Source of the DNA: Rhodosorus marinus CCMP1338
Taxonomy: Eukaryota; Plantae; Rhodophyta
DNA: 64,000 nucleotides
Direction: 5' to 3'
NCBI GenBank assembly: GCA_029953675.1
Contig: JAMWBK010000009.1
Span: 1 to 64,000, forward strand
Each line of letters opens with the position of its first letter. The first letter of the stretch is position 1. Position numbers and translations under genes: made by a program. Positions 9,401-35,658 of this stretch are shown in pieces. Under the pieces are notes generated by a model, which was not told the DNA's origin, made no database searches, and saw nothing but the letters and a program-made list of their open reading frames with translations.

Positions 9401-9401
9401 G

Positions 9402-11692: not shown

Positions 11693-11699
11693 ATTCACA

Positions 11700-11812: not shown

Positions 11813-11814
11813 TT

Positions 11815-12860: not shown

Positions 12861-12879
12861 AGTGTAGGATCCCCAGTAA

Positions 12880-13725
12880 GTACCAGACTCACGTAACCGT
12901 AAACTTTACTGGGCAGCTGCCTACTGCAGCGTATCACTAATTCTACTACTGTCCAGGGAAAATCTTATTCTAACCCCGCTACCAGGGTCTCATGCTACGT
13001 TCTAAAAAAAAAACAGGGACCAGTGGATTCTCCAACTGGTCCACGCGCAAAGCCCCTAGGGCTATCTCCGCATTACCTCGCCAAAGTTGCCCGTTGATCT
13101 GCGATCTTACATCGCTCAGCTCCTCACTCCTGTGCAATAGGTGTTTGCAGCTGTCCCGCAGAGACTCCTGTGCCATCTTTCCCGTCCGCCCAAACGTTTC
13201 TACCGCAATTGGGATGAACTCGTCATCCGGGTGCTCTATCGTCATCGCCTCCTTGTAGTGCGCTTTCTTCCAGCTCTCTGCACATCTTGCTGCGTATCCA
13301 TTCTCCCCCTCACTACGCCTCAGATACTTCCCTTGCAGAGGAGACACAACCGTCACGTCCAGCGCATACCGTTGCAACGTCCTCGGATGCGTAGCAATGA
13401 TGTCTGGCCGTAGACCGTAGTTTTCAAAGTACTTCTCTGGCTCCTGTTCGATGTCTAGAAAGTTCCACCTGTTCAGCCACCTTGCGATCTCCGTGCATAT
13501 CTCTTCATGCCTACGTTGCCACAGCCCAGTCGACGTGGGGCAATGATGAAAGCGTTGTACTACATTTGCACCGTGTTTACCACGGCATCGAGTACACTTC
13601 TCCGTTGTCCGCAGCCCCGGAATCGGTAGCCCCGGTAGTTGTCGGATATTAACCTGCATTTCCGTCGAGCTCAGCTTTTTCGGCTCCAAAGTCGGCAGTT
13701 CTCGCAGCCAGACTCCCGACCCCAG
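12880..13725 (-). mobile_element. 5'-truncated family B-like RLE element
   Basis: ORF 12979-13743: CTRC...HHCPTSTG...RRH, LRPDI, ALDVTV, KKAHY; 3' UTR and tail at 12883-12970. Confidence 0.88.
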
Positions 13726-13776
13726 ACTGGACTTTACTAGCATAGCCTGAAGCGCTACGCAAGGCGTGAAGATGAA

Positions 13777-16700
13777 CTAATAACTAGGGAGGCAAGCATG
13801 CAACCCCAGGCGCCGATGGCGCGCCTCGGAAAGCATGTCGCTGGAATATCGCCAAAGGGAGACACTTAAACGCCTCAAGAGCGCCAAATATTCAGTAGGA
13901 TGCTCAGCAAAACATTTCCGCAACCACTCTAAACCCGACTTATCCACGTGACCAAAGCTTTCCACAATGAATGGCTGGAACCGGTGAGAGCGACCCTCAG
14001 CGCAAGGCAGACTGGCCATGCTCTCAGCATACCGTCGTTCCTTAACTCTTCGAAGGGCTGAAGCCGCGGCCCCCCGGCGGCGGGCGGCTGCGGTGAGGTG
14101 GGCGCTGGCCACGGGGCAGGTAATCGCAAGGTCCACATATGTTGAGCGTCTGGCAGCAGCGTCGGAGACGAGGAGATCGGCTATACAACGGGGCGGTGCA
14201 GAGTCCGAGATGGATCTGGGCAGTTCCGACTCAACCTCAACCGTATGCCCTATCCGAGTCAAAGATTCGCTGAGGATGTACTTGAGGCGAGTGTGACGCC
14301 TCGTATGGAGACCTCGCAACAGTCCGCAGGAACCCAGGAAGTGGTAGCCACAAGCGTCAATCCGGCTCTCACATCCCTGACAGAAAGACGGCCGATTAGA
14401 GTGCCACGGAGCCTGTGGCAAACCGAGATAGATCCGTGCGGCAGAACGGAACTGGAAAGCATCGAGACGATGACTCAATGACGACGGTAGAGTGGTTAAC
14501 CACAAGTGCGAGAGGTGGCCTCCCATGCCGCGGAGACGAGCGGCAGTGGTAGGCGGCGTGAGAGGAGAATTGAGCATGACTGTGTGAGCGGCACTGTGTT
14601 GGCCCCAGGTGAGGCTATGTTGAATCACATCAGTGCGGGAGCTCCACAATCGGCTCAAACCCGGGTAGTCTGCAACAGGGGACCCGGGGCTAGCCTCTCC
14701 GTCATCGGCAAGAACTCGGTCGAGGGGAAAATCCTCAATCGCTTCAGCTCGTCCCCATAACAGCTCCCCCCAGGAACGAAAGCGGGACCGATTTGCGTCC
14801 GGCACGGCGTTGCACCTCCTGAACGCGTGTTGAAGACCATCATAAATTGTCAAAAGCGGGGGCGGCAGGGTCACTGGATCCTCGTTGGTCAAAGCTCGAG
14901 CCAAGAGGCAGGCACTTCGCATCCGGAAGGTCACCAACGTTCGCAGCGCGGTAGCCCAGGAGGCAACCGCCGCTGGCGAGCATACCAGCCCACGGTCTGC
15001 GACGCCGAATCCCCCTAATCGCAACGGTAGAGCGATCTGTGCACGAATAAAGTCCCTGTCGGGAGCAGCTTCAAGATCGAGGGGCTCATCCAAGAGCGTT
15101 CCCCAGTGTTGCAGGGTCATTTCGTCGGCTTTAGCCGCGATCCACGAGCCCCAAGCTGGAGGCAGGCTGCGCAACCAGTAGTTGAGTCTGGGACCGGCAC
15201 AAAAGCGGGAAAGCAAGCAGGCCGATTGCAGCATGCTGTCGGGTAGGTGCTCAATGGCGTCGGTGAGTTGCTTGTGCCGTGCCAAAACTCGCTCACAGGA
15301 TGCTTGGACAAAGTTGTCAGTCCCCAATCCGACGCCGTGGTGTTCGAACCCTTCACGTTCGCTGATTAGTCGCAGAGTGGGTGGCAGAGAGTTCAGCGAC
15401 ACGTCCCTCGGGGGGGAGAAAGCGACATTTTTCTGTTTCAACAGTCAAACCGACGCGACGTGCAATCGCTTCGATCGCGGTCAGTCCCCTAGCCAGGGTG
15501 TCAGGGGTGCCCAGCAATGTTACGTCATCGTGGTACGCGCAGATTCGAAGATCCGAGACCTCAGTCGAAAGACGTAAAAGTACGAGCTGTAGGGCACAGG
15601 CATGAAGAAGAGGTCCGCAAGGGTCGCCTTGTTGGACGCCAGTATGTGCTTGAAAAACAGTGCCCTCCGTTGTCAAGTAGGGGAGGCTCTCCCCTCCGTA
15701 AATACCCGATAGAAACGGCCACGCCTCCGGAAACACACGTCGGAGCACCTCTAGCGCATGCGTCCGCGACACGCTGTTGAATGCGTTCCGGAAATCAACC
15801 ACCAAGACTCCCCACTCCGGCCTACTGGCGCGTTCTAGCTCGATCCTATGGGTGATCAGTTCGCAACCCCCAGAAAATCCCACCCCTACTTGCAAGGGCG
15901 CCATAAAAGCTGTGACGCGCTGGCGAAGGCGCTGGCATAGCCACCTCCCGGCTAACTTCCGTAGGCTCTCCACCATCCCGATCGGCCGGAGACGCGGGTG
16001 GGCCGGCTGGTGGTCAGGTTTCGTGAGCAAGCAAAGCTGTGCCTGCCGGAGATGTTCCCATGGCGCGGACGCACCCGATACGCCCTGGAACAACTTGTTA
16101 AGGATCCTCAGAAGCGCGCTCTGGCCAGGCTGGCTCAGGGCCTGCAATAGCTCTGTTCTTAGTCCGGAGGGTCCAGGACAGCGTCCCCGACGCGAGGTAC
16201 GAAGCAAATCCTCCAGGTCAGACTCACTGAGGGTCAGATCGATGCGAAACCTGGCCAACTCCGGACGGTCCAAGAATACCTCGAATTCAGGGGACAAATC
16301 CACGTCGGACTCAGGGAACAAAGACGACACTGTCTGGGCGAGACTATCATCGTAGGGGAGGACAGGCGCCTGGCCCTCCAAAACCCGCGCCGCTCGACGT
16401 AAATCGCCCACTGCTACCAATTTCTGTACTCGAGCTGGCACGGGCGACACTGTGCCATGCCGAGTCCGACGGGCGGATGGTGCTGACGACGCCAAATAGC
16501 TGCGCTGTAGTACTTCGAAGTCTCCCTTCAAGAACAGGGCCAGTCGGTCTCGTACTCGCCATCTGCGCTCCGATGTGTGAATGGGGGCCAGAATCAGGCG
16601 CGGCATGACCCCCAGAAAAACCCAAATGACTGTGTCCCGAATGTTGCGAGCCAGGCTCGTGAAGATGAAATCGAGAATGGTTCCAGCTACCAGAAGGTCT

Positions 16701-16849
16701 CCACGAGGAAGGACGACTGGGGGAATGCCCCCACGGAGGGGAAGCGAGCCTCCTTCCAAAGAAATCCACCGCCGGAGCCAACTCCGAAAACGCGTACGCC
16801 AAATGCCCCAGTCTCCGCCCTCCTTCAGGACATAAGACTGTAGATCCAT
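13777..16849 (-). CDS. Family A ORF2: reverse transcriptase plus CxxC..H...C zinc knuckle and RLE; one frameshift at a G run near 15410
   Basis: RLRPIG, QVGVG, VDFRNAFNSV, GVQQGDPCGP, AYHDD; QIALPLRLGGFG; CQGC...HFLGSC...RRH; ADLLV..YVDLAI..KERRY; FIVESFG. Confidence 0.9.
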
Positions 16850-16880
16850 AGGCTGCGACCTCGCAGCCGTGCCTGGAGCG

Positions 16881-18289
16881 CTAATCGTGCTTCTCCCCCT
16901 TAGACCCGGGGGAGTCGGTCCTCGCTCTCTTACCTCCTATCCGCACCAAAGTCGTGAGCCTCCCACTCCGCGAGGCTCGCGGAACGGATCCCGCGGGCTT
17001 CAGCAAAGTAACCTGGGCGTCCTCCACCGCCATGCCCTCAGTCTGCTCCCCTGCCTCACCACTCTCGCTGGAAGTAGTGCTGGAAGCAGAGCCCTCCAAA
17101 ATCCCCACCCGCTGCAGCTCTGTCTTGTAGCGCGAAGTCAGCACAAGTCGCCTCTCCAGATCGAAGAAACTGGAAACCGCCATGCGCAGGTGACGAGGGC
17201 CCGACCGGAACCGCGCCAACAAGATCCTCTCAAGGCGCTGAATCCGTAGCCAATGGATCGCTGCCGCCTTCACGCTGCTCTCATGCTCAGAGAGCCCTGC
17301 CGTTTCTCCCGGAGACAGGAAATTGCCCGAGAAACGGTCAAAATCGAAGTGCAAAACCACCTGCGGGTTGCAGCGCAGCCACCGGGCGCTCTCAGGCCAC
17401 TGCTCGGTAGGCTTCGCCAGCAAGGCCTCCAGGTACTTGGCGGCGGTTGCGGAGACCAAAAACAGCACATCGCGGCCCTCATAGTTTGCGAAGAAGAAAT
17501 CACCCCGGCTGCACCCTAACGATTCCGCAAAAGTGTCCCGGAAGTCTCGCATAGACGGAACCTGTCCTCGTGTAGTCTGGGGCCGGACATTTCGCACCCA
17601 CAGAAATTGGAGAGTGGTCTCCACAGGTCCATCCTGAGGCTCGCGAGATGGTATGAAACGGAGCATAGCCGCCGTACGTGTGGCAGTGGTGCCCTTCCGC
17701 AAGACTGATGCGTACGAAGCGCCCCCTTGCGGCCACCACGTGCCCCCGAAGTAGCCGGGAGCTGGTGACGACCTGAGGGCTGGTCCAAGAGAGGGAAGTC
17801 CACAGCTGCAGTCTCCTCCACACCGGTTGCCGCACAGTCACCACCACCATTGCCTCGAGTCCCCGAGCGCTGAAGCGCGTTTTGGCCCGGCCTGCCGCTC
17901 CCCAACGTCGTACTGTCCCGCGCAGAAGCAACAGCCCTCGCCTGTCCCGGGACAGGTTCATGTTGATTGACCGGATGTTGACTGCCTTCAGCCAACGCTG
18001 CCACTCTGGGGCAATTCAAATTCTCGTCCGAATTTGAATTTGACCTGGCCAGCAATCCCGATTCCAGCCCACCTAGCTTCTGGGTGAGCTGAGGGAGCAC
18101 TCCACGATCACTCGCAGCCGTGATCAGGCTGGTGACAGCGGAGATAAGTGAACGCGCCTGGGTGCCAGAAGCGCCTTCCAAGTCAACCTCGGAAGAAAAC
18201 GTGCCGCAGCTGAGGCGAACACGGAGTCCCCCACCTGGCAGTGCCTCCTTGGGAGGAGGCTCCGTCGAGTGCGGAGATATCCCTACCAT
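16881..18289 (-). CDS. Family A ORF1 (no recognisable gag knuckle); frameshifted near 17700-17760
   Basis: ORF pieces 17516-18364 and 16881-17702; the WVRNVRP motif is homologous to the B/C ORF1 LRNVRPP. Confidence 0.7.
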
Positions 18290-18559
18290 CCTGAGGGAAT
18301 CCGCCAAGGAAACGTTGCACCACCAATATGAAACCGCACCGAGAGAATAATCGACCAAACCCAACCCAAATAGGAAAGGCCCCGCAACTCACCCACCCGG
18401 AAGACAGAAGTAGTTGCAAATGCAAACGACGCCCCGCGGAAAATCGAGGGGAAGGCGTACCAGAGGAAGCGCTTCCCGTAAACGAACACGCTCGCGACCG
18501 AAAAAGAAACAAAACCCCAATCCTCGACAACTAGCATAGCCTCGATACCCCAATTACTA

Positions 18560-21185
18560 GCCCAGACTAACGCAACCGTAAGCTTTACTGGGCCGCTGAC
18601 TACTGCAGCGCAACACTACGTCTAATCCTATCTAGGGAGAAACTTACTGGAACCCCGCTACCGGGGTCTCATGCTACGTTCAAAAGAAAAAACAGGCACC
18701 AGCGGATTCTCCAACTGGTCCACGCGCAAAGCGCCTACTGCTATCTCCGCGTTACCTCGCCATAGTTGCCGGTTTATCTGGGATCTCACGTCTCTGAGCT
18801 CCTCACTCCTGTGTAGTAAGTGTTTGCAGCTGTCGCGGAGGGACTCTTGTGCCATTTGCCCCGTACGCACAAACGTCTCTATCGCTATCGGGATGAACTT
18901 GTCATCCGGTTTCTCGATCACCATCGCTTCCTTGAAGTGAGCGATTTTCCACTTCTCCGCAGCTCTCGCCGCGTATCCGCTATTAACTTGGCTCCGCCGC
19001 AAATATTTTCCCTGTAGTGGTGACACCACGGTCACATCCAGCGCATACCTTTGTTTGATCCTCGGATGCCTAGCAACGATATCAGGTCGCAGTCCGTAGT
19101 TCTCGAAGCACCCCTCAGGTTCTTGCTCTACGTCCATGAAGTTCCATTGCCTCAGCCACCGTGCCAGCTCTCTGCAGATTTCGTCGTGTCTACGTTGCCA
19201 CAGTCCAGTTGATGTTGGGCAGTGATGAAACCGTTGTACCCCAGTCCTTCCGTGTTTACTCCGGCAACTAGTGCACTTCTCGGTGGTCCGCAATCCCGGA
19301 ATTGGCAGCCCCAGCAGTTGTCGAACGTTTACCTGCATCTCAACCGCACTCATTTTTTTCGGTGTCAGCGTTGGTATTTCACGCAGCCAGACTTTCGACC
19401 CGGATCCCGCGGCGGACCGTAATCGAGCTCGGTTTTCAGGGGAGATTCGTGGGTTGGTGACCAAGCTTTGGAATGCACAATGGTGTGCCTCTCGAGAGAG
19501 GGTTTGTTGTATTGAACCATTATTCCAAGCTGCAGTCTCGCCCGGTGCGCTTCGAAGAGATGTTTCGCGCGGTTGTTGCAGGGTAGTCAGTGCCAAGATC
19601 CGCGGCGGGGTTTCTGGTCCGAGCCTCCGTTGTATTGCTCGCGACGATGCACATATCTGGTCCGCAGCTGTGCAGTCGACCATCGTTGCTCCATCGGCTC
19701 GTATGTGTCCGGCGAGCGTGCTGCCGAAACTTCCCGCTCTAGTTCAGTCAGGTATGGCCATTCATCTTCATTGTTCCGGAAGGTGTTTCTCCATGACGAG
19801 TAAAACGCGATGGGTTGGACGCGCTTTCGAGTAGCGAAACCCAACCCTCCCCAGCGGCAGGGCAGAGGGATTTGGTCCGAGATCAGCTCTGCGTACTCGT
19901 CGTCCTCTACAGCTGTCGTAGCGAGGCCTCCGAATAGAATTTCCAGATGATATCTGGTCATCACATCCGCCTCGCGTGCCAGAGTTCTTCCAAACTCGTA
20001 TGCGAGGCATCGTAGAACATAGTCTATCCGCGTTTCCGCACAGAACCTGAAGAGGGCAATTTGCGTCGTAAGCTCCGTTTGTGGAAGCTCGGCAATTTCC
20101 TCAAAGAGTTTCTCATGCTTATTTTGCAACCCCCGGCACTCCTGTTCGATATGTTCTCGGCCGCCTATCGGTATCGAGTGGATAGTGACTCCGTCTCTGG
20201 TCACTTGGACTCCAGGAATCTCATGGTTGGCCACTCGCGTGGTAGTCAGTGTTCGCCCGTACACAGTGCACTTGCCGAGTTGCAGGCGTGCTCCAAGAGA
20301 GGGGAGCACAGTTTTTCCCCATGCCAGGGATGCCTTCAAGGCTTGTAGCGACCCGACAATCCTGATATCGTCGTGGATAGCAACAATCGTTTCGTTGGAG
20401 AACTTGGCTCGCAACGCTCTTAGAAAGGGCGCCAGGGATAGTGCATGTAGCACCGGCCCCAGTGGATCTCCCTGTTGGACTCCTGTAGCTGCTTGGAGAG
20501 TCAGGCGAGAGGTGTCGGTTTCGTTCTGTCCAGGGGAAGATCGCCAGCCACAGAGCGTCGGTGAGTCCGCGTTGTCGCTTCCATAGCCAAGCCTATACAC
20601 TGGTGCAAGCTCCGGGAAGTGCTCGTCCACCAGTTGCTTGGCAAGGCGTCGGTCGATGCGATTAAAGGCATTCTCCAGGTCTAGCCGAAGGATCATCGAA
20701 TCGGGTTCGCATGACAAATGGGCCTGGATCGCGTGAAGTGAGCGTTAAGCACCCGCCACTTACTCCAATACCCAGTTGTAAGGGCACCAGGAGCTCACGC
20801 ACCCTGTTCATAACCGCGTGAAGAGTCCATTGCGTTGCTACCTTGCGCAAAGCTTCTGATACTCCGATAGGGCGAACTCCGGGATGTTCCTGCGGCACTG
20901 AACCCTTGTTAGGCTTCGAGAACGGCAGGAGTCGACTGCCGCGAAGGGCGCGGATCAGAGCCGGGGAAAATTTCTCCGGAGCGGTCGCCAGTTGTCGCAA
21001 TACACGAATCAACGCCACTTGCGTCTGTTGAGTTGCACCTTGGAGGTGTTCCGCTCGGAGACCGCTAGGACCTGGGCTCTTGCCCTGAGAAAGACGTGCC
21101 ACGATCGACATGAGGCCCTCGTCGGCCGCTTTTCTTGAATCCCACCGCCGCTTAAGTGTTTCGGTATTCAGAGCGAGCAAAGATT
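18560..21185 (-). mobile_element. 5'-truncated, disrupted family C RLE element
   Basis: RT (LDLENAFNRI, GVQQGDPLGP, AIHDD) and RLE pieces in ORFs 20662-21180, 19587-20717 and 18658-19683; near-identical to 30450-33060. Confidence 0.92.
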
Positions 21186-21380
21186 CCAGGGTAACTGTAA
21201 ACTTTACTCGGCAACTGCCTAATGCAGCGCAACACTAATTCTATCAAGATCTAGGGAAAATGTGTGTTTAACCCCTGACTAACGTAACCGTAAGCTTTAC
21301 TGGGCAGCTGCCTACTGCAGCGCAACACTACGTCTAATCCTATCTAGGGAGAAACTTACTGGAACCCCGCTACCGGGGTC
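21185..21380 (-). repeat. Two stacked isolated 3' UTR/tail remnants (B-type ~85 bp, C-type ~110 bp)
   Basis: gtaaactttactcggcaactgcc... followed by taacccctgactaacgtaaccgtaagctttactgggcagctgcc...aaccccgctaccggggtct. Confidence 0.85.
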
Positions 21381-22168
21381 TAACCCCGTAGCCTTTATTG
21401 GGCAGCTACCTCATGTAGCGCATCACACGATCACTACGTACGCACTAACCAAACCTGGACTCCCTGTCCAGGAGTCTCATCTAAATTCTACTTAGGGGAA
21501 ATATCGGTCTATCTGCGCGATCTTTCTCGATCGCGTGCTCAACTAGCGCAGCATTGTGCTGCCACAAAATGCGGTTTAGTTGACCCCTCACCGACAATAG
21601 ATGGGAGTCACGATCATGCAGGTGCGCGCTCGCCGTTCGAAGAAATTCAAGGCTTGCCTGGCCCATTCCACCAAATGTCTCAAAAATGAACGGCACAAGA
21701 ACCACATCTCGGTTTTGCTCCCTCAGCACTTCCTTATAATGCAACGCCTTCGCTTGTTCGGCCTATTTCGCAGCATACCCTCAGTTCCAGCTCGTATGTC
21801 TCAACGGATGTCTTTGAAGTGGCGATGTCACCATCACATCCACCACGTACACGTATCCGCTCGTCGGGTGTCGTGCAACGATGTCTGGGCGAATTCCAGA
21901 CCCAGCAAAGAACCCCTGAGGCTCTACTTGTATCTCCGTGAAACTCCATAGGTGTAACCATCGACTCAGTTCCACCTGTAGCTCGTCGTGCCTCCTGGTT
22001 CGCATCCCTGATGAGGTCCTGCAGTGGTGCAGCCGCTGGATCCCACGCACATCGTGTGGTTGCTCGCAGACTGTGCACGTGTGTGACCGCCCTAGTCCTT
22101 GTAGTGGTAGCCCTAGAAGCATCCGCATGCTCCACAACATCTCATTTCGCGTCAACTGCCGCGGCCCT
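21380..22168 (-). mobile_element. Family D RLE 3' fragment with stop codons
   Basis: CTVC...HHCRTSSG..RRH, IRPDIV, VVDV, VPFIFETFG; same tail as the 12000 copy. Confidence 0.85.
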
Positions 22169-22480
22169 GTACTGGACTTTACTAGCATAGCCTGAAGCGC
22201 TACGCAAGGCGTGAAGATGAACTAATAACTAGGGAGGCAAGCATGCAACCCCAGGCGCCGATGGCGCGCCTCGGAAAGCATGTCGCTGGAATATCGCCAA
22301 AGGGAGACACTTAAACGCCTCAAGAGCGCCAAATATTCAGTAGGATGCTCAGCAAAACATTTCCGCAACCACTCTAAACCCGACTTATCCACGTGACCAA
22401 AGCTTTCCACAATGAATGGCTGGAACCGGTGAGAGCGACCCTCAGCGCAAGGCAGACTGGCCATGCTCTCAGCATACCTG
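22168..22480 (-). mobile_element. Family A 3' fragment
   Basis: Essentially identical to 13726-14030. Confidence 0.9.
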
Positions 22481-22748
22481 TACTAGGACAGTCACGTAGC
22501 CAGACCCCGCACCCCGTTCCAGATGCCGATCGGATCCTCGCCCGGTCTAGGTCGTCCAGTGTTGAATCTCCAGTAAGCTCCTCAAAGGCTTGTCGGTGAC
22601 ACTCTCGAGAGAGCGTTTTTTGGATCGGACCGTCAAACCTTTGAGTACCTGCTGTGTCTTCCGCTGTGCCTTCGGCCGAGTCCTCCAGCGGTTGCCAATC
22701 GGCCAGCCTCTGGATCCGTGCACTGGTCGTCGCTGGCAAACGTCGTCT
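22480..22748 (-). mobile_element. Internal ORF2 fragment of a B/D-like RLE element
   Basis: IQKTLSRECHRQAF...RARIRSASGTGCGVWLR is homologous to B/C IQQTLSREAHHCAF...RARIRSAAGSGSGVWLR. Confidence 0.75.
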
Positions 22749-22750
22749 AA

Positions 22751-25700: not shown

Positions 25701-27620
25701 TACCCGAGGACCAATCCTGGGAGCCCGGAGAGGAAGAGGCTGGCATTCACTGGTGCGCTGCGGTCCATTGTGAGCTGGAGGGCGACCCGAAGGAGGCTGC
25801 TCCAGGCGTTGACGTGTGCGCGAGGCACGAAACCTCGAGTAGGGGCGGGACAGTGTGCGAGACGAGTCCACAACCAACCTCTGTCCGTGATATCGTTGAC
25901 GAAGACATTCCAGCGTTCAATCCAGTCCTGTCGCTTGGAGAAGAAAAGAGGCTCTTCCCGTCTGCGTTTGATTCCCCTACGTCGGTTCGGCATTATTGGG
26001 GGTTGTCTTCCTGACTTGTCTGGATGTCCATCGCATTATCGTGGGCTTCGGAGGGCGTCTGGGCATCGTTATCGCGCTGAGATGCTTCTGGGGCTGCGAG
26101 AGTCATCTCGGTGTCATGGCATGTGCCTGCCGCTGTCACGCGTGTGCGCTTCTGTTGGGGGGGGTCCGGAAAGTTGTGCGGGAGCTCGGCGTGTGGATTT
26201 TCCTCTTCGGCATCCACCTGTGGTAGTTGAGACGTGGCGCTGGAGTCACCCGAAGCGTCAACGGTCCCGCGGGCTTCCTGTGCGGCTCCGTCAGGAGCCG
26301 AGGCTTCTGGGGCTGCGTGTGTAGCTGCTGCAGTCTCAAGGGGTTCCACACTCTCCCCGGGGACCGCTGGTGGATGTTGTAGGCCATGTAACGCTCGTAG
26401 ACGCTCTTCTAGCGTCTCATGGATGGCTGCGAGAGTAGAGAACGACAGGTGTCTCTTTCCGAGCCTCGCGCGAATCCTGATGATCTGTTGTATGGCTCGT
26501 TGCAGCGTCTGGGCTGGGATATCCGCTGGGGTGATCCTTTGCCTTTCGTTGTAGCCCAACAGGTTGTCAGCCTCCAGTCCCTGTCCTGTGTGGAGGGTCA
26601 CTTGCCGGTCAGGAGGTCTCAGTGTGAACGATCCAAAGATCCCTGTTCTGAAAACGCCTCGAGCGATAGCGCTTTGTACAATCGGGATTGCATCCGGATG
26701 GCAGAGCAAACTTGCGTGTGATGAGATGAAATCCACATGCGCGATGTGAGAAGCTGGGATTCCCAGAGCGCGGCAGAGTACGGTGGTGAAGTCCGAAGGT
26801 GCCACATCATCCTGCCTTGGGGGGCGGACGTTTCGAAGGGTGGCAAGGATCGGTTTGGTCTCTGGTCCCCAGGTTGCTCCCTCCACCGTAGCGTGCAGCT
26901 GTCTCAGGGCTGCTTGCTGGGTCTGCGGCCCAGGGCGTCCTACTGTGCGGGTTGGTGCTGCTTCTCCGCGCACTGAGGCTGTCTGAGCCGTGCGCTCAGC
27001 GTAGGTAGGTTGTGCACTCCCATTCCCGATGACTGGGAAGGCCTCTGCGTAGTCCACTGGGACCGTGACACCTGTCCTGAGCGGAAGTTGATTGAGACGC
27101 GTTCCGGCTGCATGTTGATTGATGGCCGCCGCCGGCGGGTGCTGTTGCAGGATTTGGGAAGGGTTCGGTGCTGCGGCTCCACTGTGCCACATATAAGGTT
27201 CTGCTGAAAGCTCGGAGAGACGTGCGGTAATTCCTTCGAGTTCAATGGTGCTGTTAATCCGTGAGTAGAGTTTGAATACAGCCTTGTAGAAGTCCGCGAT
27301 AACTGCTTCGCCAATTCCCAAGTCCTGATAGCACCTGTCGAAGGCGCGAAGTTGGTGCAAAAAGACTGCCGCAGGTCCTGTTGCCTCTTGAGTCTCCATC
27401 CTGTAAGCCTCCTGTGTGTTCACTGCTTCGAAATCCTGGGTGCTTGTTGTCCTGCCGCTCGGTTCTGGCCTCCGACTCCCGTTCGGTGTCCCCACCCCCT
27501 CTTCGCCTGGGCGAGGGCCGTTGGTGCCCGGGTGGCGGAGAGGTGCTCGGTACTTTCCCAGCTTCTCCTTCTCGATCATAAAGCTTTCGTTAATAAAATC
27601 TCACAGTATAATTGTGCTTG
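22751..27620 (-). mobile_element. Full-length RLE non-LTR retrotransposon family B (ORF1 25993-27579; ORF2 from 25993 with nonsense mutations near 24035 and 23700)
   Basis: 528-aa ORF1; RT motifs IRPIG, LDLENAFNRI, GVQQGDPLGP, AIHDD; RLE CTSC..HHC..RRH, LRPDI, ALDVTV, KLAHY; 3' UTR and tail. Confidence 0.93.
25993..27579 (-). CDS. Family B ORF1 (intact, 528 aa)
   Basis: Open frame homologous to family C ORF1 (FLHQLR.FDRCYQDLGI, LRNVRPP); its TAA overlaps the ORF2 ATG. Confidence 0.85.
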   Translation of the reverse strand: MIEKEKLGKYRAPLRHPGTNGPRPGEEGVGTPNGSRRPEPSGRTTSTQDFEAVNTQEAYRMETQEATGPAAVFLHQLRAFDRCYQDLGIGEAVIADFYKAVFKLYSRINSTIELEGITARLSELSAEPYMWHSGAAAPNPSQILQQHPPAAAINQHAAGTRLNQLPLRTGVTVPVDYAEAFPVIGNGSAQPTYAERTAQTASVRGEAAPTRTVGRPGPQTQQAALRQLHATVEGATWGPETKPILATLRNVRPPRQDDVAPSDFTTVLCRALGIPASHIAHVDFISSHASLLCHPDAIPIVQSAIARGVFRTGIFGSFTLRPPDRQVTLHTGQGLEADNLLGYNERQRITPADIPAQTLQRAIQQIIRIRARLGKRHLSFSTLAAIHETLEERLRALHGLQHPPAVPGESVEPLETAAATHAAPEASAPDGAAQEARGTVDASGDSSATSQLPQVDAEEENPHAELPHNFPDPPQQKRTRVTAAGTCHDTEMTLAAPEASQRDNDAQTPSEAHDNAMDIQTSQEDNPQ

Positions 27621-27622
27621 TT

Positions 27623-28118
27623 CCCAGACTAACGAAACCGTAAACTCTCGTCAGAGTAACGTAACCCCAGAAAAAACAGGCACCAGCGGATTCTCCAACT
27701 GGTCCACGCGCAAAGCGCCTAGCGCTATCTCTGCGTTACCTCGCCATAGTTGCCGGTTTATCTGGGATCTCACGTCGCTCAGCTCCTCACTCCTGTGCAG
27801 TAGGTGTTTGCAGCTGTCGCGGAGGAACTCTTGTGCCATTTGCCCCGTACGCCCAAACGTCTCTATCGCTATCGGGATGAACTTGTCATCCGGTTTCTCG
27901 ATCACCATCGCTTCCTTGTAGTGAGCGATTTTCCACTTCTCCGCAGCTCTCGCCGCGTATCCGCTATCATCTTGGCTCCGCCGCAAATAGTTTCCCTGTA
28001 ATGGTGACACCACGGTCACATCCAGCGCATACCTTTGTTTGGTCCTCGGATGCCTAGCGACGATATCAGGTCGCAGTCCGTAGTTCTCGAAGTACCTCAG
28101 GTTCTTGCTCTACGTCCG
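27623..28118 (-). mobile_element. Family C 3' fragment lacking its 3' UTR, capped by telomere-like units
   Basis: Matches C ORF2 up to gtgcctgttttttct, then ggggttacgttactctg. Confidence 0.85.
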
Positions 28119-28123
28119 TGAAA

Positions 28124-31100
28124 TCTGGGGTAAAGTGTACACGGTAAAAAGGTAAAGTTCGTACGGAAGACAACAACAAAAGTTCGTAAGAAAGTTCGAA
28201 GATGATCGTGAGGGAGGTACGCGGGCCGTACCCCGAACCTCTTGTCATTCAGGGCCCGGACCCCTCGGGCACCCGGGAAGTTTTGCAAAGGCACCAGCAC
28301 CAGTCTGATGGCGACGTGCAGGAGACACCAACGGAACCACAAGCAGGCAATGTTCAAGCAAGAACGCGGACCGAGTCTGCAGCCGCAACCGACCCGGCAG
28401 CCACATTCTTGCATCAACTGCGTAGCTTCGACAGATGCTACCAGGACCTGGGCATCGCTGCGTCCGAAATTACAGACTTCTACAAAGCCGTTTTTCAACT
28501 GTACTCGAGGGTCAACAGCTCGCAAGAGCTGCAAGGTGTCACCGGACGCCTTACGGAGTTGTCCCGGAAACCGGGTATGTGGGAAGGTGGAGCCGCTACT
28601 ACGAATTCTGCACCATTTCCGCATGATCTCCCGCGAGATCTCCCGCGACAGGCCGTAGGCAACCACCTCGGCCCCGAAACCCCTTACCGTAACGGTCGTC
28701 TGCCAGGAAGTTATGCCGTCCATGATTTAGGAACCCGGCTCCCTGCGCCCCAGGGAGGGACAGGTGTCCGGGATCTAGGACACCATGCGGAGACATTCCC
28801 AGCCATCGGGGAGGGCCCTACAAGGCCAACCTTCGCCGATTTCGCAGCACAAAAAGAACCAGCGAGAGGAGGAGATGCTCGTTCCAGAACTTGTGGACGC
28901 CCTGGACCCCAGACCCAACAGGCTGCCCTACGGCAACTGCACGCTACGGTCGGGGGGTCTGGCTGGGGACCCGATGTTGCTCCAGTCCTCGCGACGCTAC
29001 GGAATGTCCGACCCCCAAGGCTGGATGAGGTGGCCCCTGCGGAGTTTGCAACGGTTCTTTGCAGAGCACTGGGTATGCCCAGCTCTTATGTGGTGCATGT
29101 GGACTTTATTGCCTCCCATGCCTGCCTGCTGTGCAATTCCGATTCTCCAAAGTGCCATCTCCCGAGGAGTTTTCCGGACTGGGATATTCGGATCCTTCAC
29201 ACAACGACACGCCGATAGACAAGTCAGCCTTTACACTGGCCAGGCGCTGGACCCAGACAACCTTCTGGGTTACCTCGAACGTCAGACCATCGCTCCCGGG
29301 GATATTGCTGCCCACACGCTGAAGCGGGCCATCGAGCAGCTTGTCCGCATTCGTTCGAGGATCCGCAGGCGACAACTCTCCTTCCACACTCTCGCAGCGC
29401 TCTACGAGTATCTGGAGGCACGACTAGAGCTCCTAAAACGCAGACAACATCCGCCTGAGGTACCCGGGGAGTGCGCGGAACCCCCGGGGCCTGCAGCCGC
29501 TTCGAACGCAGACCCTGAAGCCTCGTCCCTTCCAGGGGATGTACAGGCAGACCGTGGGACAGTTTGACGCCCAGGTTGAGACTAGCGCGACTTCCCAAGT
29601 ACCTGAGAACGCAGCACACGAGGACAATCCCCATGCGGAGCTCCTCTGCAACCTTCCGGAGCCACCTCAACAGAAGCGCTCGCGAGTATCCGCCGATGGA
29701 ACCGGACCGGATACTGAGATGACTCCGGCAGCCGTGGAGACTCCACCGGATACCACTGTGATACAGGTTGCCCTTGACGGCAACCATCACGCGATGGACA
29801 CGCAGGAGAGCCAGGAAAACCCAGCGCAAGAATGCCGAGCAGACGTAGGGGAATCAAACGACGCCGCGACGAGCCTCTGTTCTTCTCGGATCGTCAAGAC
29901 TGGATCAGGCGGTGGAGCGTCTTCGTCGACGACGTCACGGAAGGAGGCAGGCAGTGGACGCGCCTTACACACTGCCCGGTTCCCACACGGCGATTTGTGC
30001 CACGCGCCCAGGTTCAAACATGGAGCTGCCTCTTCCGTGCTGCATTAGAGCTCTCTATGGACAGCACCGCACCAACAAACGCCAGCCTGCTTCTTGTCGG
30101 ACTTCCAGGCCTGGTCCTTGGACACTCTGCACTTGATGTTGGCATTCAGGTATCGCATGTGCTTGAAGGAGAATTCTCTACGGTCTGGAGCGCTCTAGAG
30201 GACAAGGCGTCTATGCTGTCGCATACTACCGCACCGCAAGGAGCTGAAGCGGTTCGACGCAAACATCTCGGGCGCCACAAGCGAGCGCTGAAACTAGCAC
30301 ACCTTGGCCGCCTTTCAGATGCAGCTCGGAGCCTACAGGCCACCGAAATGGCACCTTTTACCGCGGCTACGTGGAGGCAACTACAAGCGCTCTTTCCCAA
30401 CCCGGCGGAAGGTGACTTACCAGACGAGATTGCACACGCCCTGCAATCTTTGCTCGCTCTGAATACCGAAACACTAAAGCGGCGGTGGGATTCAAGAAAA
30501 GCTGCCGACGAGGGCCTCATGTCGATCGTGGCACGTCTTCCTCAGGGCAAGAGCCCAGGTCCTAGCGGTCTCCGAGCGGAACACCTCCAAGGTGCATTTC
30601 AACAGACGCAAGTGGCGTTGATTCGTGTATTGCGACAACTGGCGACCGCTCCTGAGAAATTTTCCCCAGCTCTGACCCGCGCCCTTCGCAGTAGTTGACT
30701 CCTGCCGTTCTCGAAGCCTAACAAGGGTTCAGTGCCGCAGGAGCATCCCGGAGTTCGCCCTATCGGAGTACCAGAAGTTTTGCGCAAGGTAGCAACGCAA
30801 TGGACTCTTCACGCGGTTATGGACAGGGTGCGTGAGCTCCTGGTGCCCTTACAACTGGGTATTGGAGTAAATGGCGGGTGCGAACGCTCACTTCACGCGA
30901 TCCAGGCCCATTTGTCATGCGCACCCGATTCGGTGGTCCTTCGGCTAGACCTAGAGAATGCCTTTAATCGCATCGACCAACGCCTTGCCAAGCAACTGGT
31001 GGACGAACACTTGCCGGAGCTTGCACCAGTGTATAGACTTGGCTATGGAAGCGACAACGCGGACTCACCGACGCTCTGTGGCTGGCGATCTTCCCCGGGA

Positions 31101-33064
31101 CAGAACGAAACCGACACCTCTCGCCTGACTCTCCAAGCAACTACAGGAGTCCAACAGGGAGATCCACTGGGGCCGGTGCTACATGCACTATCCCTGGCGC
31201 CCTTTCTAAGAGCGTTGCGAGCCAAGTTCCCCAACGAAACGATTGTTGCTATCCACGACGATATCACGATTGTCGGGTCGCTACAAGCCGTGAAGGCGTC
31301 CCTGGCATGGGCAAAAACTGTGCTCCCCTCTCTTGGAGCACGCCTGCAACTCGGCAAGTGCACTGTGTACGGGCGAACACTGACTACCACGCGAGTGGTC
31401 AACCATGAGATTCCTGGAGTGCAAGTGACCAGAGACGGAGTCACCATCCACTCGATACCGATAGGCGGCCGAGAATATATCGAACAGGAGTGCCGGGGGT
31501 TGCAAAATAAGCATGAGAAACTCTTTGAGGAAATTGCCAAGCTCCCACAACCGGAGCTTACGACGCAAATTGCCCTCTTCAGGTTCTGTGCGGAAACGCG
31601 ACTAGACTATGTGCTACGATGCCTCGCATACGAGTTTGGAAGAAATCTGGCACGCGAGGCCGACGTGATGACCAGATATCACCTGGAAATTCTATTCGGA
31701 GGCCTCTCGCTACGACAGCTGTAGAGGACGACGAGTACGCAGAGCTGATCTCGGACCAAATCCCTCTGCCCTGCCGCTGGGGAGGTTTGGGTTTCGCTAC
31801 TCGAAAGCGCGTCCAACCCATCGCGTTTTACTCGTCATGTAGAAACACCTTCCGGAACAATGAAGATGAATGGCCATACCTGACTGAACTAGAGCGGGAG
31901 GTTACGGCAGAACGCTCACCAGACACATACGAGCCGATGGATCAACGATGGTCGACTGCACAGCTGGCGGACCAGATCTGTGCATCGTCGCGAGCAATAC
32001 AACGGAGGCTCGGACCAGAAACCCCACCGCGGATCTTGGCACTGACTACCCTGCAACAACCGCGCGAAATGTCTCTTCGAAGCGCACCGGGCGAGACTGC
32101 AGCTTGGAATAATGGTTCAATACAACAAACCCTCTCTCGAGAGGCACACCATTGTGCATTCCAAAGCTTGGTCACCAACCCACGAATCTCCACTGAAAAC
32201 CGAGCTCGAATACGGTCCGCCGCGGGATCCGGGTCGGGAGTCTGGCTGCGTGAAGTACCAACGCTGACACCGAAAAAATTGAGTGCGGTTGAGATGCAGG
32301 TAAACGTTCGACAACTGCTGGGTCTGCCAATTCCGGGATTGCGGACCACCGAGAAGTGCACTAGTTGCCGGAGTAAACACGGAAGGACTGGGGTACAACG
32401 GTTTCATCACTGCCCAACATCAACTGGACTGTGGCAACGTAGGCATGACGAAATCTGCAGAGAGCTGGCACGGTGGCTAAGGCGATGGAACTTCATGGAC
32501 GTAGAGCAAGAACCTGAGGGGTACTTCGAGAACTACGGACTGCGACCTGATATCGTTGCTAGGCATCCGAGGACCAAACAAAGGTATGCGCTGGATGTAA
32601 CGGTGGTGTCACCATTACAGGGAAACTATTTGCGGCGGAGCCAAGATGATAGCGGATACGCGGCGAGAGCTGCGGAGAAGTGGAAAATCGCTCACTACAA
32701 GGAAGCGATGGTGATCGAGAAACCGGATGACAAGTTCATCCCGATAGCGATAGAGACGTTTGGGCGTACGGGGCAAATGGCACAAGAGTTCCTCCGCGAC
32801 AGCTGCAAACACCTACCGCACAGGAGTGAGGAGCTGAGAGACGTGAGATCCCAGATAAACCGGCAACTATGGCGAGGTAACGCGGAGATAGCACTAGGCG
32901 CTTTGCGCGTGGACCAGTTGGAGAATCCGCTGGTGCCTGTCTTTTCTTTTGAACGTAGCATGAGACCCCGGTAGCGGGGTTCCAGTAAGTTTTTCCCTAG
33001 ATAGGATTAGACGTAGTGTTGCGCAGCAGTAGGCAGCTGCCCCGTAAAGCTTACGGTTACGTTA
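28124..33064 (+). mobile_element. Full-length RLE non-LTR retrotransposon family C (ORF1 from 28202; ORF2 29832-32974, disrupted at 30696 and ~31710)
   Basis: ORF1 MIVREVRG...; RT VRPIG, LDLENAFNRI, GVQQGDPLGP, AIHDD; RLE CTSC..HHC..RRHD, LRPDIV, ALDVTV, KIAHY, IAIETFG. Confidence 0.93.
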
Positions 33065-34850
33065 CCTCAGACTAACGTAACCGTAAGCTTTACGGGGCAG
33101 CTGCCTACTGCTGCGCAACACTACGTCTAATCCTATCCAGGGAAAAACTTACTGGAACCCCGCTACCGGGGTCTCATGCTACGTTCAAAAGAAAAGACAG
33201 GCACCAGCGGATTCTCCAACTGGTCCACGCGCAAAGCGCCTAGTGCTATCTCCGCGTTACCTCGCCATAGTTGCCGGTTTATCTGGGATCTCACGTCTCT
33301 CAGCTCCTCACTCCTGTGCGGTAGGTGTTTGCAGCTGTCGCGGAGGAACTCTTGTGCCATTTGCCCCGTACGCCCAAACGTCTCTATCGCTATCGGGATG
33401 AACTTGTCATCCGGTTTCTCGATCACCATCGCTTCCTTGTAGTGAGCGATTTTCCACTTCTCCGCAGCTCTCGCCGCGTATCCGCTATCATCTTGGCTCC
33501 GCCGCAAATAGTTTCCCTGTAATGGTGACACCACGGTCACATCCAGCGCATACCTTTGTTTGGTCCTCGGATGCCTAGCAACGATATCAGGTCGCAGTCC
33601 GTAGCTCTCGAAGTACCCCTCAGGTTCTTGCTCTACGTCCATGAAGTTCCATCGCCTCAGCCACCGTGCCAGCTCTCTGCAGATTTCGTCGTGCCTACGT
33701 TGCCACAGTCCAGTTGATGTTGGGCAGTGATGAAACCGTTGTACCCCAGTCCTTCCGTGTTTACTCCGGCAACTAGTGCACTTCTCGGTGGTCCGCAATC
33801 CCGGAATTGGCAGCCCCAGCAGTTGTCGAACGTTTACCTGCATCTCAACCCCACTCATTTTTTTCGGTGTCAGCGTTGGTACTTCACGCAGCCAGACTCC
33901 CGACCCGGATCCCGCGGCGGACCGTATTCGAGCTCGGTTTTCAGTGGAGATTCGTGGGTTGGTGACCAAGCTTTGGAATGCACAATGGTGTGCCTCTCGA
34001 GAGAGGGTTTGTTGTATTGAACCATTATTCCAAGCTGCAGTCTCGCCCGGTGCGCTTCGAAGAGACATTTCGCGCGGTTGTTGCAGGGTAGTCAGTGCCA
34101 AGATCCGCGGTGGGGTTTCTGGTCCTAGCCTCTGTTGTATTGCTCGCGACGATGCACAGATCTGGTCCGCCAGCTGTGAAGTCGACCATCGTTGATCCAT
34201 CGGCTCGTATGTGTCTGGTGAGCGTTCTGCCGAAACCTCCCGCTCTAGTTCAGTCAGGTATGGCCATTCATCTTCATTGTTCCCGAAGGTGTTTCTCCAT
34301 GACGAGTAAAACGCGATGGGTTGGACGCGCTTTCGAGTAGCGAAACCCAACCCTCCCCAGCGGCAAGGCAGAGCGATTTGGTCCGAGATCAGCTCTGCGT
34401 ACTCGTCGTCCTCTACAGCTGTCGTAGCGAGGCCTCCGAATAGAATTTCCAGATGATATCTGGTCATCACATCCGCCTCGCGTGCCAGAGTTCTTCCAAA
34501 CTCGTATGCGAGGCATCGTAGAACATAGTCTAGTCGCGTTTCCGCACAGAACCTGAAGAGGGCAATTTGCGTCGTAAGCTCCGTTTGTGGAAGCTTGGCA
34601 ATTTCCTCAAAGAGTTTCTCATGCTTATTTTGCAACCCCCGGCACTCCTGTTCGATATATTCTCGGCTGCCTATCGGTATCGAGTGGATGGTGACTCCGT
34701 CTCTGGTCACTTGCACTCCAGGGATCTCATGATTGACCATTCGCGTGGTAGTCAGTGTTCGCCCGTACACAGTGGAGTTGCCGAGTTGCAGGCGTGCTCC
34801 AAGAGAGGGGAGCACAGTTCTTGCCCATGCCAGGGATGCCTTCAAGGCTT
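33065..34850 (-). mobile_element. 5'-truncated family C copy joined tail-to-tail to the preceding element
   Basis: ORF 33163-34845 is the reverse-complement match of ~31290-32974. Confidence 0.93.
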
Positions 34851-35139
34851 GTAGTGATGGACGCTGTCCTTGAATAGAGTAGGCCGCACAATTCCATTTT
34901 TCACGCGTTAGTGCAAGTGCGACTCACAACTGTGCGGCGGGCACCTATTGGATTCATTTCATTTGCACTGGGATCTGAACTGCTTATGAACTCCATGCAC
35001 GACTAACTCATCTTCAGCGGTGAACTGGCAGTGGATTACCCTGTTTCTTCGATTCGTTAACCACGAGGCAACTATTTCAGATACATTGCCCAGAACGGAA
35101 TGTCCTCTACCTGGGGTTGCCAATGCCCTAAAGTGCAAA

Positions 35140-35230
35140 AATTGTAAAGCGTAAAAATTGTAAAGTGGAAATAGTGTAAAGTGTTAAATGTGTAAAGTGC
35201 TAAAAGTGTAAAAAGTGTAAAGTGAAAATA
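35140..35230. repeat. Degenerate minisatellite built on GTAAAGTG/TAAAAATT
   Basis: aaagtgcaaaaattgtaaagcgtaaaaattgtaaagtggaaatagtgtaaagtgttaaatgtgtaaagtg... Confidence 0.7.
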
Positions 35231-35591: not shown

Positions 35592-35658
35592 TCCCTAGTT
35601 ATTAGTTCATCTTCACGCCTTGCGTAGCGCTTCAGGCTATGCTAGTAAAGTCCAGTCC
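35592..35658 (+). mobile_element. 67-bp 5'-truncated family A insertion with a 12-bp target-site duplication
   Basis: Insert equals the family A 3' end; flanked by agtgatatctct at 35580-35591 and 35659-35670. Confidence 0.92.

Follow-up and report, generated by a model that had tools for sequence, protein, structure and literature searches.

Retrotransposons that insert into telomeric repeats have been described in fungi and insects. The MoTeR1 and MoTeR2 elements of Magnaporthe oryzae, and the FoTeRs of Fusarium oxysporum, are non-LTR elements with a reverse transcriptase (RT) related to CRE/SLACS and a restriction-enzyme-like endonuclease (RLE). They are inserted in TTAGGG telomere repeats in a single orientation, with their 5′ ends facing the chromosome end, and form multi-element arrays separated by short interstitial telomere tracts, in which truncated copies carry de novo added telomere and variant repeats sit next to element 5′ ends (PMC7367193, PMC12857005). 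In Bombyx mori, SART1 and TRAS1 insert at a specific register of a 5-nt telomeric repeat using an AP-type endonuclease and poly(A) tails, and the SART1 sense strand is colinear with the G-rich strand. The CRE1/CRE2, SLACS and CZAR elements have an RT followed by a CCHC/RLE region and insert strictly into spliced-leader RNA genes, while other LINEs, such as CR1 and the I factor, end in a short repeated unit, or 3′ microsatellite. Unusually long telomere units are found in the yeasts Candida glabrata (16 nt) and Kluyveromyces lactis (25 nt). A 12-nt unit is reported for Allium (PMC6765143). In red algae, telomere data are "mostly missing or fragmentary" (PMC7046594), and TRAP assays and BAL31 blots with canonical probes failed in three red-algal classes (PMC3622300).

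Here we analyzed a 64-kb stretch of the Rhodosorus marinus genome (the window), which equals positions 1-64000 of the 1.83-Mb contig JAMWBK010000009.1 (contig 9; assembly GCA_029953675.1). An earlier note on this sequence reported that many retrotransposon copies end in a near-copy of a G-rich 16-mer and proposed that the 16-mer may be the host's telomeric repeat, targeted by retrotransposons that build subtelomeric arrays. We find that the reported copies are real, and that the proposed interpretation is supported in part.

A G-rich 16-mer ends many LINE copies at the tip of contig 9

Using a scan for 16-nt-periodic stretches with ≤1 mismatch per 16-mer, we recovered every copy that the earlier note listed, all on the minus strand, at 12883-12898, 18561-18577, 21269-21289, 22753-22772, 27623-27639, 27652-27672 and 33064-33083, plus one it had not listed at 62917-62943 (exact 21-mer at 62921-62941). 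What the note gave as a second arm, at 33055-33064, is the plus-strand sequence GGTTACGTTA. These matches are far above chance, with 0.03 expected against 5 observed for the 16-mer with 2 mismatches, and 0.00 expected against 4 observed for the 21-mer with 3 mismatches. Each copy in the array directly follows a conserved ~110-nt 3′ tail (...gcgctgcagtaggcagctgcccagtaaagcttac|GGTTACGTTAGTCTGGGG) of an RT-bearing element, and the next element's 5′ end starts right after TCTGG(GG)(T), as the note had described. Tandem repeat analysis found no tandem 16-mer array in the window, and the longest periodic run in the array is 21 nt, or 1.3 units. Two tails of the same family end at GGTTAC without the rest of the motif (11695 on the plus strand and 21191 on the minus strand).

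The array spans positions 1-34857, and all members but one have their sense strand pointing to the contig tip. The most proximal member (33065-34857, minus) is a 5′-truncated C-family LINE copy that abuts unique DNA and whose tail ends GGTTACGTTAGTCTGAGGTAA. It is followed by a full-length C-family RLE LINE (28123-33064, plus), the only inverted member, which is preceded at its 5′ end by TCTGGGG(TAA) and whose tail meets the previous tail head-on (1359-nt arms, 99% complementary). Next is a C-family 3′ fragment (27623-28122, minus) cut in its 3′ UTR at ...tgtttttTCT, followed by GGGGTTACGTTACTCTG (1.3 units), 12 nt, and a 22-nt tail end GGTTTCGTTAGTCTGGG. The D-family LINE at 22751-27622 (minus) encodes an ORF1 of 528 aa and an RT ORF of 652 aa followed by two in-frame stops; its 5′ end follows ...GTTAGTCTGGG and its tail ends GGTTACGTTAGTCTGAGGTAA.

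Toward the tip, a 5′-truncated F-family fragment covering the RLE region (21382-22750, minus) has a tail ending ctacGGGGTTAG and is interrupted at 22171-22478 by a 308-nt E1 3′ fragment flanked by ACAG. Two stacked, severely 5′-truncated C-type tails of 111 nt and 78 nt lie at 21191-21381 (minus), with GGTTACGTTAGTCAGGGGTTA between them, and are detected as a tandem repeat of period 93. A 5′-truncated C-family copy (18561-21191, minus; 96% to 30439-33064) has a tail ending GGTTGCGTTAGTCTGGG. The 5.7-kb stretch 12883-18560 is composite. It contains an E1 element (13726-18560, minus), a different RLE LINE family nested in the array, and a separate 840-nt 5′-truncated C/D-related fragment (12883-13722, minus; 79% to C) that carries the motif, with a tail ending GGTTACGTGAGTCTGG. 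A 5′-truncated F-family fragment (12002-12882, minus) has a tail ending ctacGGGGTTAGG, and a C-family 3′ fragment (11380-11695, plus) has a tail that stops at GGTTAC with no GTTAGTCT... following. A tail fragment of a further family (2021-2265, minus) ends ...cacGATTACAAATGGAGTATAAGG and abuts nt 1 of a U2 snRNA. Finally, an E1-like copy (1-1810, minus; 95.7% to E1) runs off the start of the contig with no repeat cap present.

Not all of the co-resident sequences share the 16-mer. The 3′ end of E1 is ...gtaaagtccagt (in the nested copy, ...gctagtaaagtccagt) with an (AGTAAAGTCC)n tail and no 16-mer, and E1 inserts non-specifically, with target-site duplications at unrelated sites; the nested copy is flanked by CTGGG on both sides. 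The third family, F, ends in GGGGTTAG. The block 2621-6626, which we had provisionally treated as a retroelement (family A), is not one, as its ORFs are Gly/Thr-Pro-rich with no RT, and only 2021-2265 is a tail fragment. We also considered targeting of small RNA genes, as by Utopia- or Keno-like LINEs, because of the U2 gene at 1824-2020. This reading was rejected, as it is a single case, the U2 is complete and uninterrupted (model positions 1-192) between two elements, and all other junctions carry the 16-mer. Exact look-ups of the proteins of ORFs 55407-56708, 36950-37708 and 31619-32974, and of the protein P0035, returned no record.

The elements have the architecture of R2/CRE-type LINEs. 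Pfam RVT_1 was found in 24035-25993 and 15353-16849, and the best PDB matches are R2 proteins (E = 1e-15). The RT and CCHC/RLE of the full-length C-family LINE at 28123-33064 were identified by profile match to R2. C-terminal to the RT, profile positions 810-978 align to R2 residues 961-1122 (i-Evalue 0.0077), covering a CCHC motif (CxxC...H...C) and a PD-(D/E)xK restriction-like endonuclease (RHD/RHN, PD..., D-V-T-V), and these motifs are readable in the translations. The only support for the CRE clade specifically is the RepeatMasker table of the R. marinus genome paper, which lists LINE/CRE (CRE/SLACS) at 9.04% of the genome.

The 16-mer forms tandem arrays outside the window

Although the window never shows more than 1.3 units, exactly the unit inferred in the earlier note, GGGGTTACGTTAGTCT, is tandem elsewhere. 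In L011, a related JGI contig, we observe 12.1 copies at 2874-3067 (period 16, 100% match) and 2 further units at 2814-2847; L011 is, however, a short contig of unverified organism and possibly RNA-derived, and an assembly chimera cannot be excluded. In L012, a locus on contig 7 of the same assembly that stops 1917 nt short of the right contig end, 3.6 copies lie at 20868-20935, about 3.6 kb from that end, as two perfect units followed by degenerate GGGGTTAGTTTGTCT, GGGGTTATCT and GGGGTTAT. A second L012 tract at 21411-21442 has 1.5-2 units. L012 also carries a copy 98.3% identical to E1. The period of 16 rules out a longer 29-nt unit (GGGGTAAGTGTACGC + GGTTACGTTAGTCT) that we had considered. 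The note had taken a 16-mer that is never tandem and only attached to element 3′ UTRs as evidence against its reading, and these arrays contradict that condition. An exact-pattern scan of JGI metagenome contigs for ACGTTAGTCTGGGGTTA gave 9 single, unrelated hits with no array, which is uninformative since the collection evidently lacks Rhodosorus. Two distant relatives, L015 (a GC-rich organism whose 3′ end runs off the contig) and L016 (a Tara scaffold with no repeat at the 3′ end), do not bear on the target.

At both contig tips the G-rich strand runs 5′ to 3′ outward. It is on the minus strand at the left tip of contig 9 and on the plus strand at the right tip of contig 7, where L012 is read in the forward direction, as locus tags NDN08_004844/45/46 ascend along it. 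The insertion register is also fixed. In C/D-type copies the 3′ junction is ...(c/t)tac|GGTTACG, and 5′ junctions fall within a 5-nt span, after TCTGG, TCTGGG, TCTGGGG or TCTGGGGT, in the window, L011 and L012. No canonical telomere repeat of any tested type (two or more units) occurs in the window, L001, L012 or L011.

The multi-unit tracts are not attached to element tails. All four tracts of 1.5 units or more, two in L012 and two in L011, are preceded by non-tail sequence: an E1 ORF1 fragment whose homology stops at ...AAGTACCTGG where the window's E1 continues AGGCC, an ORF1 fragment of another family, an RT fragment in L011 that stops at ...CTGGTGGA, and an unrelated 26-mer. Three tracts start directly after 3′-truncated element bodies. 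With 3′ ends distal, terminal erosion followed by healing would predict this pattern, but nested insertion is not excluded. One 3′-truncated piece followed by a unit in the window (27669) has a plausible remainder 6.3 kb downstream, starting 18 nt after the break (21381), and at least that case looks like nesting rather than healing.

These tracts also bear on another possibility, that the 16-mer is simply a LINE 3′ microsatellite generated by slippage of C/D-type RTs on their own RNA 3′ end, with chromosome ends capped by something else. Multi-unit tracts would then be repeat-only, extremely 5′-truncated insertions at off-target sites, which later attracted further insertions. E1 does exactly this with a 10-mer, (AGTAAAGTCC)n, at L012 16906-16994 and at 6807-6848 of the window; every unit in the window is attached to a tail; and the case at 27669/21381 fits nesting. 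However, tail slippage cannot place repeats after ORF1 and RT fragments, including one from a family (E1) that lacks the motif, without extra events each time. It also does not by itself explain the outward G-strand polarity at two contig tips or the confinement of elements to those tips, and no other candidate telomere repeat appears among roughly 50 kb of array. We therefore consider this explanation unlikely. Still less likely is a subtelomeric or other satellite unrelated to end protection, into which the elements happen to insert. Tandem tracts were indeed seen only internally, between elements, but they are very short, always in one polarity relative to the contig tip, and abut broken elements at G-rich seeds, and the unit is G-rich with a GGGGTTA core typical of telomeric repeats.

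The isolated copy at 62906-62941 (minus) is a 36-nt insert, GGGTAAGTGTACGCGGTTACGTTAGTCTGGGGTTAC, in unique intergenic DNA, the 815-nt MFS-Cmc1 spacer. On the plus strand, 62920-62941 is a C-strand 22-mer with a 6-nt terminal redundancy, and it was our only candidate in the window for the complementary template of a telomerase RNA (...TAACCCCAGACTAACGTAACC...). We rejected it because the orthologous spacer of a sister lineage (L014) has conserved flanks but lacks the 36-nt insert, and because there is no fold signal (z = -0.65) and no Rfam match. The insert is thus lineage-specific, and it shows that tiny off-target insertions occur, as the microsatellite explanation would require.

A probable telomeric repeat targeted by several LINE families

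Taken together, GGGGTTACGTTAGTCT is a genuine tandem repeat of Rhodosorus, and we favor, with moderate confidence, the view that it is the telomeric repeat, added to chromosome ends with the G-rich strand pointing outward and used as a landing site by at least three families of R2/CRE-type LINEs (C, D and F). In this view, the endonuclease nicks the C-rich strand within or next to CCCC, and the freed ...GTAACC-3′ end pairs with the element RNA's terminal ...UUAC-GGUUAC and primes reverse transcription. Each copy would therefore end ...cttac|GGTTACGTTAGTCTGGGG in one register, with its sense strand colinear with the G-strand and its 3′ end distal, and its full-length or truncated 5′ end would be joined just after TCTGG(GG)(T). 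Repeated cycles of insertion into the terminal tract, erosion or breakage, re-addition of repeats and re-insertion would stack elements head-to-tail with only 1-4 units left between them, building the 35-kb array. The tandem arrays, their polarity at two contig tips, the fixed register, the RT/RLE architecture and the tracts following 3′-truncated elements are directly observed, whereas the terminal position, synthesis by telomerase and the exact nick sites are inferred, with no telomerase RNA or TERT in hand. Several observations weigh against this view. No tract was seen at a physical sequence end, where contig 9 begins inside an E1-like element and the sequence analyzed from contig 7 stops 1.9 kb short of its end; no junction within the window exceeds 1.3 units; neither proximal array border shows repeats between unique DNA and the first element; and family F carries its own ending, while two C tails stop at GGTTAC. 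The genome paper reports telomeres on 12 contigs but never names the motif, and in the literature library searched no paper contains the 16-mer in the six rotations and complements used.

A more speculative possibility, which we regard as unlikely, is that the tracts do function at chromosome ends but are made by the LINEs themselves rather than by a dedicated telomerase. The terminally redundant 22-nt 3′ end of the element RNA (GGUUAC...GGGGUUAC; GGUUACGUUAGUCUGGGGUUAC, 1.4 units) would, if the transcript includes the 16-mer, serve as a telomerase-like template that the element's RT copies reiteratively onto G-rich ends. The tail plus flank does form a 1.4-unit template with a 6-nt terminal redundancy, what would be abortive products of 15-25 nt are stacked at 27623-27672, the elements make up 9% of the genome, and the tracts are perfect copies. 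However, nothing in the present data distinguishes this from telomerase synthesis, and telomerase subunit genes are predicted in another red alga, Cyanidioschyzon, so that loss in Rhodosorus would need to be shown. If true, the 16-nt telomere would be a retrotransposon product, a living intermediate between retrotransposon and telomerase end-maintenance.

A 16-nt unit would explain the failure of canonical probes in red algae, and would give a concrete probe, a TRAP primer and a template motif with which to look for the first red-algal telomerase RNA. It would also extend telomere-targeted RLE retrotransposons from fungi to Archaeplastida, making R. marinus a natural system for studying how such elements shape chromosome ends.

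Comparison with known systems

The array most closely resembles those of MoTeR and FoTeR elements in its RT and RLE, its predominantly single orientation of elements, its multi-element structure with short interstitial tracts and variant repeats next to element 5′ ends, and its repeats on truncated copies, which in MoTeR arrays are de novo added telomere. It differs in that the host repeat is 16 nt, in that several diverged families share the target, in its red-algal host, of whose genome the elements make up about 9%, and in its opposite orientation, with 3′ rather than 5′ ends facing the contig tip, so that erosion would truncate 3′ sides. The elements share register-specific insertion with SART1 and TRAS1, and colinearity of the sense strand with the G-rich strand with SART1, but have a C-terminal RLE and a structured 3′ tail. 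With CRE1/CRE2, SLACS and CZAR they share the broad RT-CCHC/RLE architecture and strict site specificity, but their target is a 16-nt tandem repeat rather than a spliced-leader RNA gene. Like the 3′ tails of CR1, the I factor and E1, the 16-mer is a short unit at the 3′ end of a LINE, but its multi-unit tracts are detached from element tails and follow truncated bodies of other families. As in C. glabrata, K. lactis and Allium, the unit is unusually long, G-rich and precisely repeated, and would need a template with a short terminal redundancy, but it occurs in Rhodophyta, a lineage whose telomere sequences are largely unknown (PMC7046594).

Organization of the array

The earlier note had listed copies of a G-rich 16-mer at the 3′ ends of retrotransposons in the window, and this observation holds, as we found every listed copy on the minus strand at numbers far exceeding chance (5 matches versus 0.03 expected, and 4 versus 0.00 expected). 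Each copy in the array follows a conserved ~110-nt tail, which holds two hairpins kept across families with one compensatory pair in each, and which ends in ...agtaaag(c/t)ttac directly before GGTTACGTTAGTCTGGGG(TTA). The 5′ end of the next element, full-length or truncated, starts right after TCTGG(GG). However, TRF finds no 16-mer array within the window, and the longest periodic run in the array is 21 nt. The genome paper states that 12 of 17 contigs carry at least one telomere, with roughly 18 contig ends scored as telomeres, but never names the repeat (PMC10250338), and its RepeatMasker table gives LINE/CRE-SLACS as 9.04% of the genome. The contig studied here, JAMWBK010000009.1 of GCA_029953675.1 (contig 9; 1,832,788 bp), begins inside a retroelement with no terminal repeat, and the window is its first 64 kb.

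From the unique DNA at 34858 toward position 1, the array begins with a 5′-truncated C-family copy (33065-34857, -), followed by an inverted full-length C element (28123-33064, +) placed tail-to-tail with the first copy. The two C-family 3′ halves, joined inside the 16-mer motif, form a near-perfect palindrome at 31706-34431 with 1359-nt arms that are 99% complementary and 8 nt apart. A small fold-back, TCTGGGGTAACCCCAGA, occurs in the same motif at 21427-21450 of L012, a locus on contig 7 of the same assembly, and these structures may be traces of end fusion or fold-back repair. The array continues with a C 3′ fragment (27623-28122, -), a D element (22751-27622, -), an F-type fragment carrying a nested E1 piece (21382-22750, -), two stacked mini-tails (21191-21381), a truncated C copy (18561-21191, -), an E1 element (13726-18560, -), a C/D-related fragment (12883-13722, -), and an F fragment (12002-12882, -). 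Beyond these lie debris and an LTR-element remnant (about 7000-12000), a non-retroelement gene (2621-6626), a tail fragment (2021-2265), a complete U2 snRNA (1824-2020), and an E1-like copy that runs off the contig. C, D, and F encode an RT, downstream of which lies a CCHC motif and a PD...D...K nuclease that aligns to the RLE of R2. Two C tails stop at GGTTAC, and F tails end in GGGGTTAG.

E1 is a different family. Its 3′ end is ...gctagtaaagtccagt, sometimes extended as a variable (AGTAAAGTCC)n microsatellite, and it lacks the 16-mer. The family occurs at 13726-18560, 22171-22478, 35592-35657, and 6795-6850 of the window and at 11553-16334, 16340-16994, and 19067-20872 of L012, and it is 98.3% identical between contigs 7 and 9. 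Its copies insert at unrelated sites with short target-site duplications, with an 11-bp TSD at 35592-35657, ACAG at 22171-22478, and CTGGG around E1 itself, and include a 66-nt mini-insert in unique DNA flanked by GTGATATCTCT.

Other features lie within or near the array. The U2 snRNA (1824-2020, -; Rfam 126 bits, model positions 1-192) sits between the end of a LINE tail fragment and, about 15-35 nt downstream, the 5′ end of an E1-like copy, and looks like a U2-LINE chimeric retrocopy made by template switching rather than a normal U2 gene. The gene at 2621-6626 (-) consists of three long consecutive ORFs (373, 467, and 511 aa) encoding Gly-rich and Thr-Pro-rich protein with no Pfam match and no RT; this host-like gene is embedded between array segments at the contig tip. 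LTR-retrotransposon remnants (integrase zinc-binding and core domains, Tf2-type SH3) lie inside the array at 9879-11593 (-), and related fragments occur in the gene-rich part of the window (43165-43956). An A-rich tandem repeat, also with period 16 (TAAAGTGCAAAAAGTG, 5.2 copies, 35129-35232), lies 270 nt proximal to the array border, and its GTAAAGTG core recurs in the 5′ UTR of the C element. In the gene-rich region, a 312-nt unit is tandemly duplicated at 46391-46967 (1.8 copies, 98% identical), and an ANTH-domain protein gene (55407-56708) is about 91% identical, outside one 105-nt intron, to R. marinus transcriptome proteins.

Tandem arrays of the 16-mer outside the window

Using a profile of the element proteins, we recovered one JGI protein (P0054) that is 75% identical to the C RT. 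Its 3.5-kb contig, L011, contains GGGGTTACGTTAGTCT as a perfect tandem array of 12.1 copies plus a further 2 units, on the sense strand of the flanking element pieces; the array may come from the same or from a diverged Rhodosorus lineage. L011 also contains, at 2240-2330, a tRNA-Lys(CTT)-like 3′ half with intact anticodon and T arms whose 5′ side reads TTTAGTCTGGGTTAC, close to the 16-mer. ARAGORN calls no tRNA there, and related stretches occur in the window near the LTR remnants (8797-8880, 43907-43953).

The only annotated R. marinus relative (NDN08_004844, whose longer product is P0067) led to L012, which covers positions 2,188,318-2,210,882 of the 2,212,799 in contig 7. In L012, an array of the same element families begins at about 8600 and runs off the locus toward the right end of the contig. 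It contains the 16-mer in tandem at 20868-20935, as two perfect units followed by degenerate shorter ones, and 1.5-2 further units at 21411-21442. L012 is not reversed, as its record carries no such flag and its locus tags ascend along it, so the G-rich strand runs 5′ to 3′ toward the contig tip at both tips examined. None of ten tested types of canonical telomere repeat occurs twice in tandem in the window, the locus L001, L012, or L011.

The main alternative is that the 16-mer is a LINE 3′ microsatellite, a slippage product as the E1 10-mer is, with the real cap being something else. In its favor, units inside the window are always attached to tails, and one truncated C piece (27669) has a likely remainder starting 18 nt further on, at 21381, which indicates nesting. 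However, all four multi-unit tracts are detached from tails, the polarity is outward at two tips, and no other repeat appears.

Sequences preceding the tracts

In every multi-unit case, the sequence before the tract is not an element tail. The tract at L012 20868 follows an E1 copy whose homology stops inside ORF1 at ...GCCAAGTACCTGG, where the E1 of the window continues AGGCCTTG. The tract at L012 21413 follows the 5′ UTR and first 478 nt of another element, cut at ...GGGAGC, and those in L011 follow an RT fragment cut at ...CTGGTGGA and an unrelated 26-mer. Each tract is followed by a new element whose 5′ end joins after TCTGGGG(T). Because the elements have their 3′ ends distal, terminal erosion or breakage followed by repeat addition would predict exactly such junctions of a 5′ part with repeats, and later insertions into the new tract would bury them, although nested insertion could also account for such junctions. 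These are the dynamics documented for MoTeR elements in Magnaporthe telomeres, where interstitial tracts range from a partial unit (minimum AGGG) up to 18 units and telomeres are added de novo on truncated elements from 1-4-nt seeds (PMC7367193). The difference is that MoTeRs face the other way.

Inferred mechanism of insertion

The 3′ junction is constant, with ...ttac joined to GGTTACG, whereas the 5′ junctions are spread over 5 nt after TCTGG. This fits an RLE nick in the C-strand at or next to CCCC. Priming would then occur by pairing of ...GTAACC-3′ with the terminal GGUUAC of the RNA, and top-strand cleavage would fall a few nucleotides downstream. The structured tail is presumably the RT-binding element, by analogy with R2. 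A distant relative of these LINEs (34% identity) in L015, from a GC-rich organism, starts just downstream of a tRNA-Met-like gene (3125-3208), which hints that other members of the group use other small-RNA-gene targets.

An isolated copy in unique DNA

An exact 21-mer at 62921-62941 lies in an 815-nt spacer between two + strand genes, MFS and Cmc1. Its C-strand 22-mer with 6-nt terminal redundancy looked like a telomerase-RNA template, and we therefore examined this possibility. L014 (JGI 3300016967), a transcript-derived contig from a sister lineage that is about 89-93% identical in the coding and UTR parts, spans the same spacer with conserved flanks but lacks a 36-nt block, GGGTAAGTGTACGCGGTTACGTTAGTCTGGGGTTAC. 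The region also has no fold signal and no Rfam match. The copy is therefore a lineage-specific mini-insert or a captured repeat fragment, not a conserved RNA gene. Its left half resembles the 5′ terminus of the C element (TCT joined to GGGGTAAAGTGTACACGG at 28124), hinting at variant units next to element 5′ ends, as in MoTeR and FoTeR. L014 is a spliced transcript contig that joins the 3′ end of the MFS gene, the whole 760-nt spacer, and the Cmc1 coding region; the spacer is therefore transcribed, or the UTRs overlap, in the sister lineage.

Interpretation and comparison with known systems

The earlier note proposed that the 16-mer may be a telomeric repeat targeted by retrotransposons that build subtelomeric arrays, and our results support this in part. 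The analysis bears out the unit, its tandem nature, the targeting, and the subterminal position of the array, whereas capping of physical chromosome ends and synthesis by telomerase are unproven and, like the insertion mechanism, are inferred. On present evidence, we consider a telomeric repeat targeted by RLE LINEs more likely than not. Synthesis by telomerase would call for an RNA containing ...TAACCCCAGACTAACGTAACC.... Alternatively, the tracts could be functional caps made by the LINE RT from its own redundant 3′ end, and the present data do not separate this possibility from telomerase synthesis. A satellite unrelated to end protection is unlikely, given the shortness of the tracts, their polarity, and the structure of the junctions. 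The 16-mer string is absent from the literature searched. Red algal telomeres are largely unknown; telomere-targeted RLE LINEs were known from fungi and long telomere units from yeasts and Allium, but neither was known from red algae.
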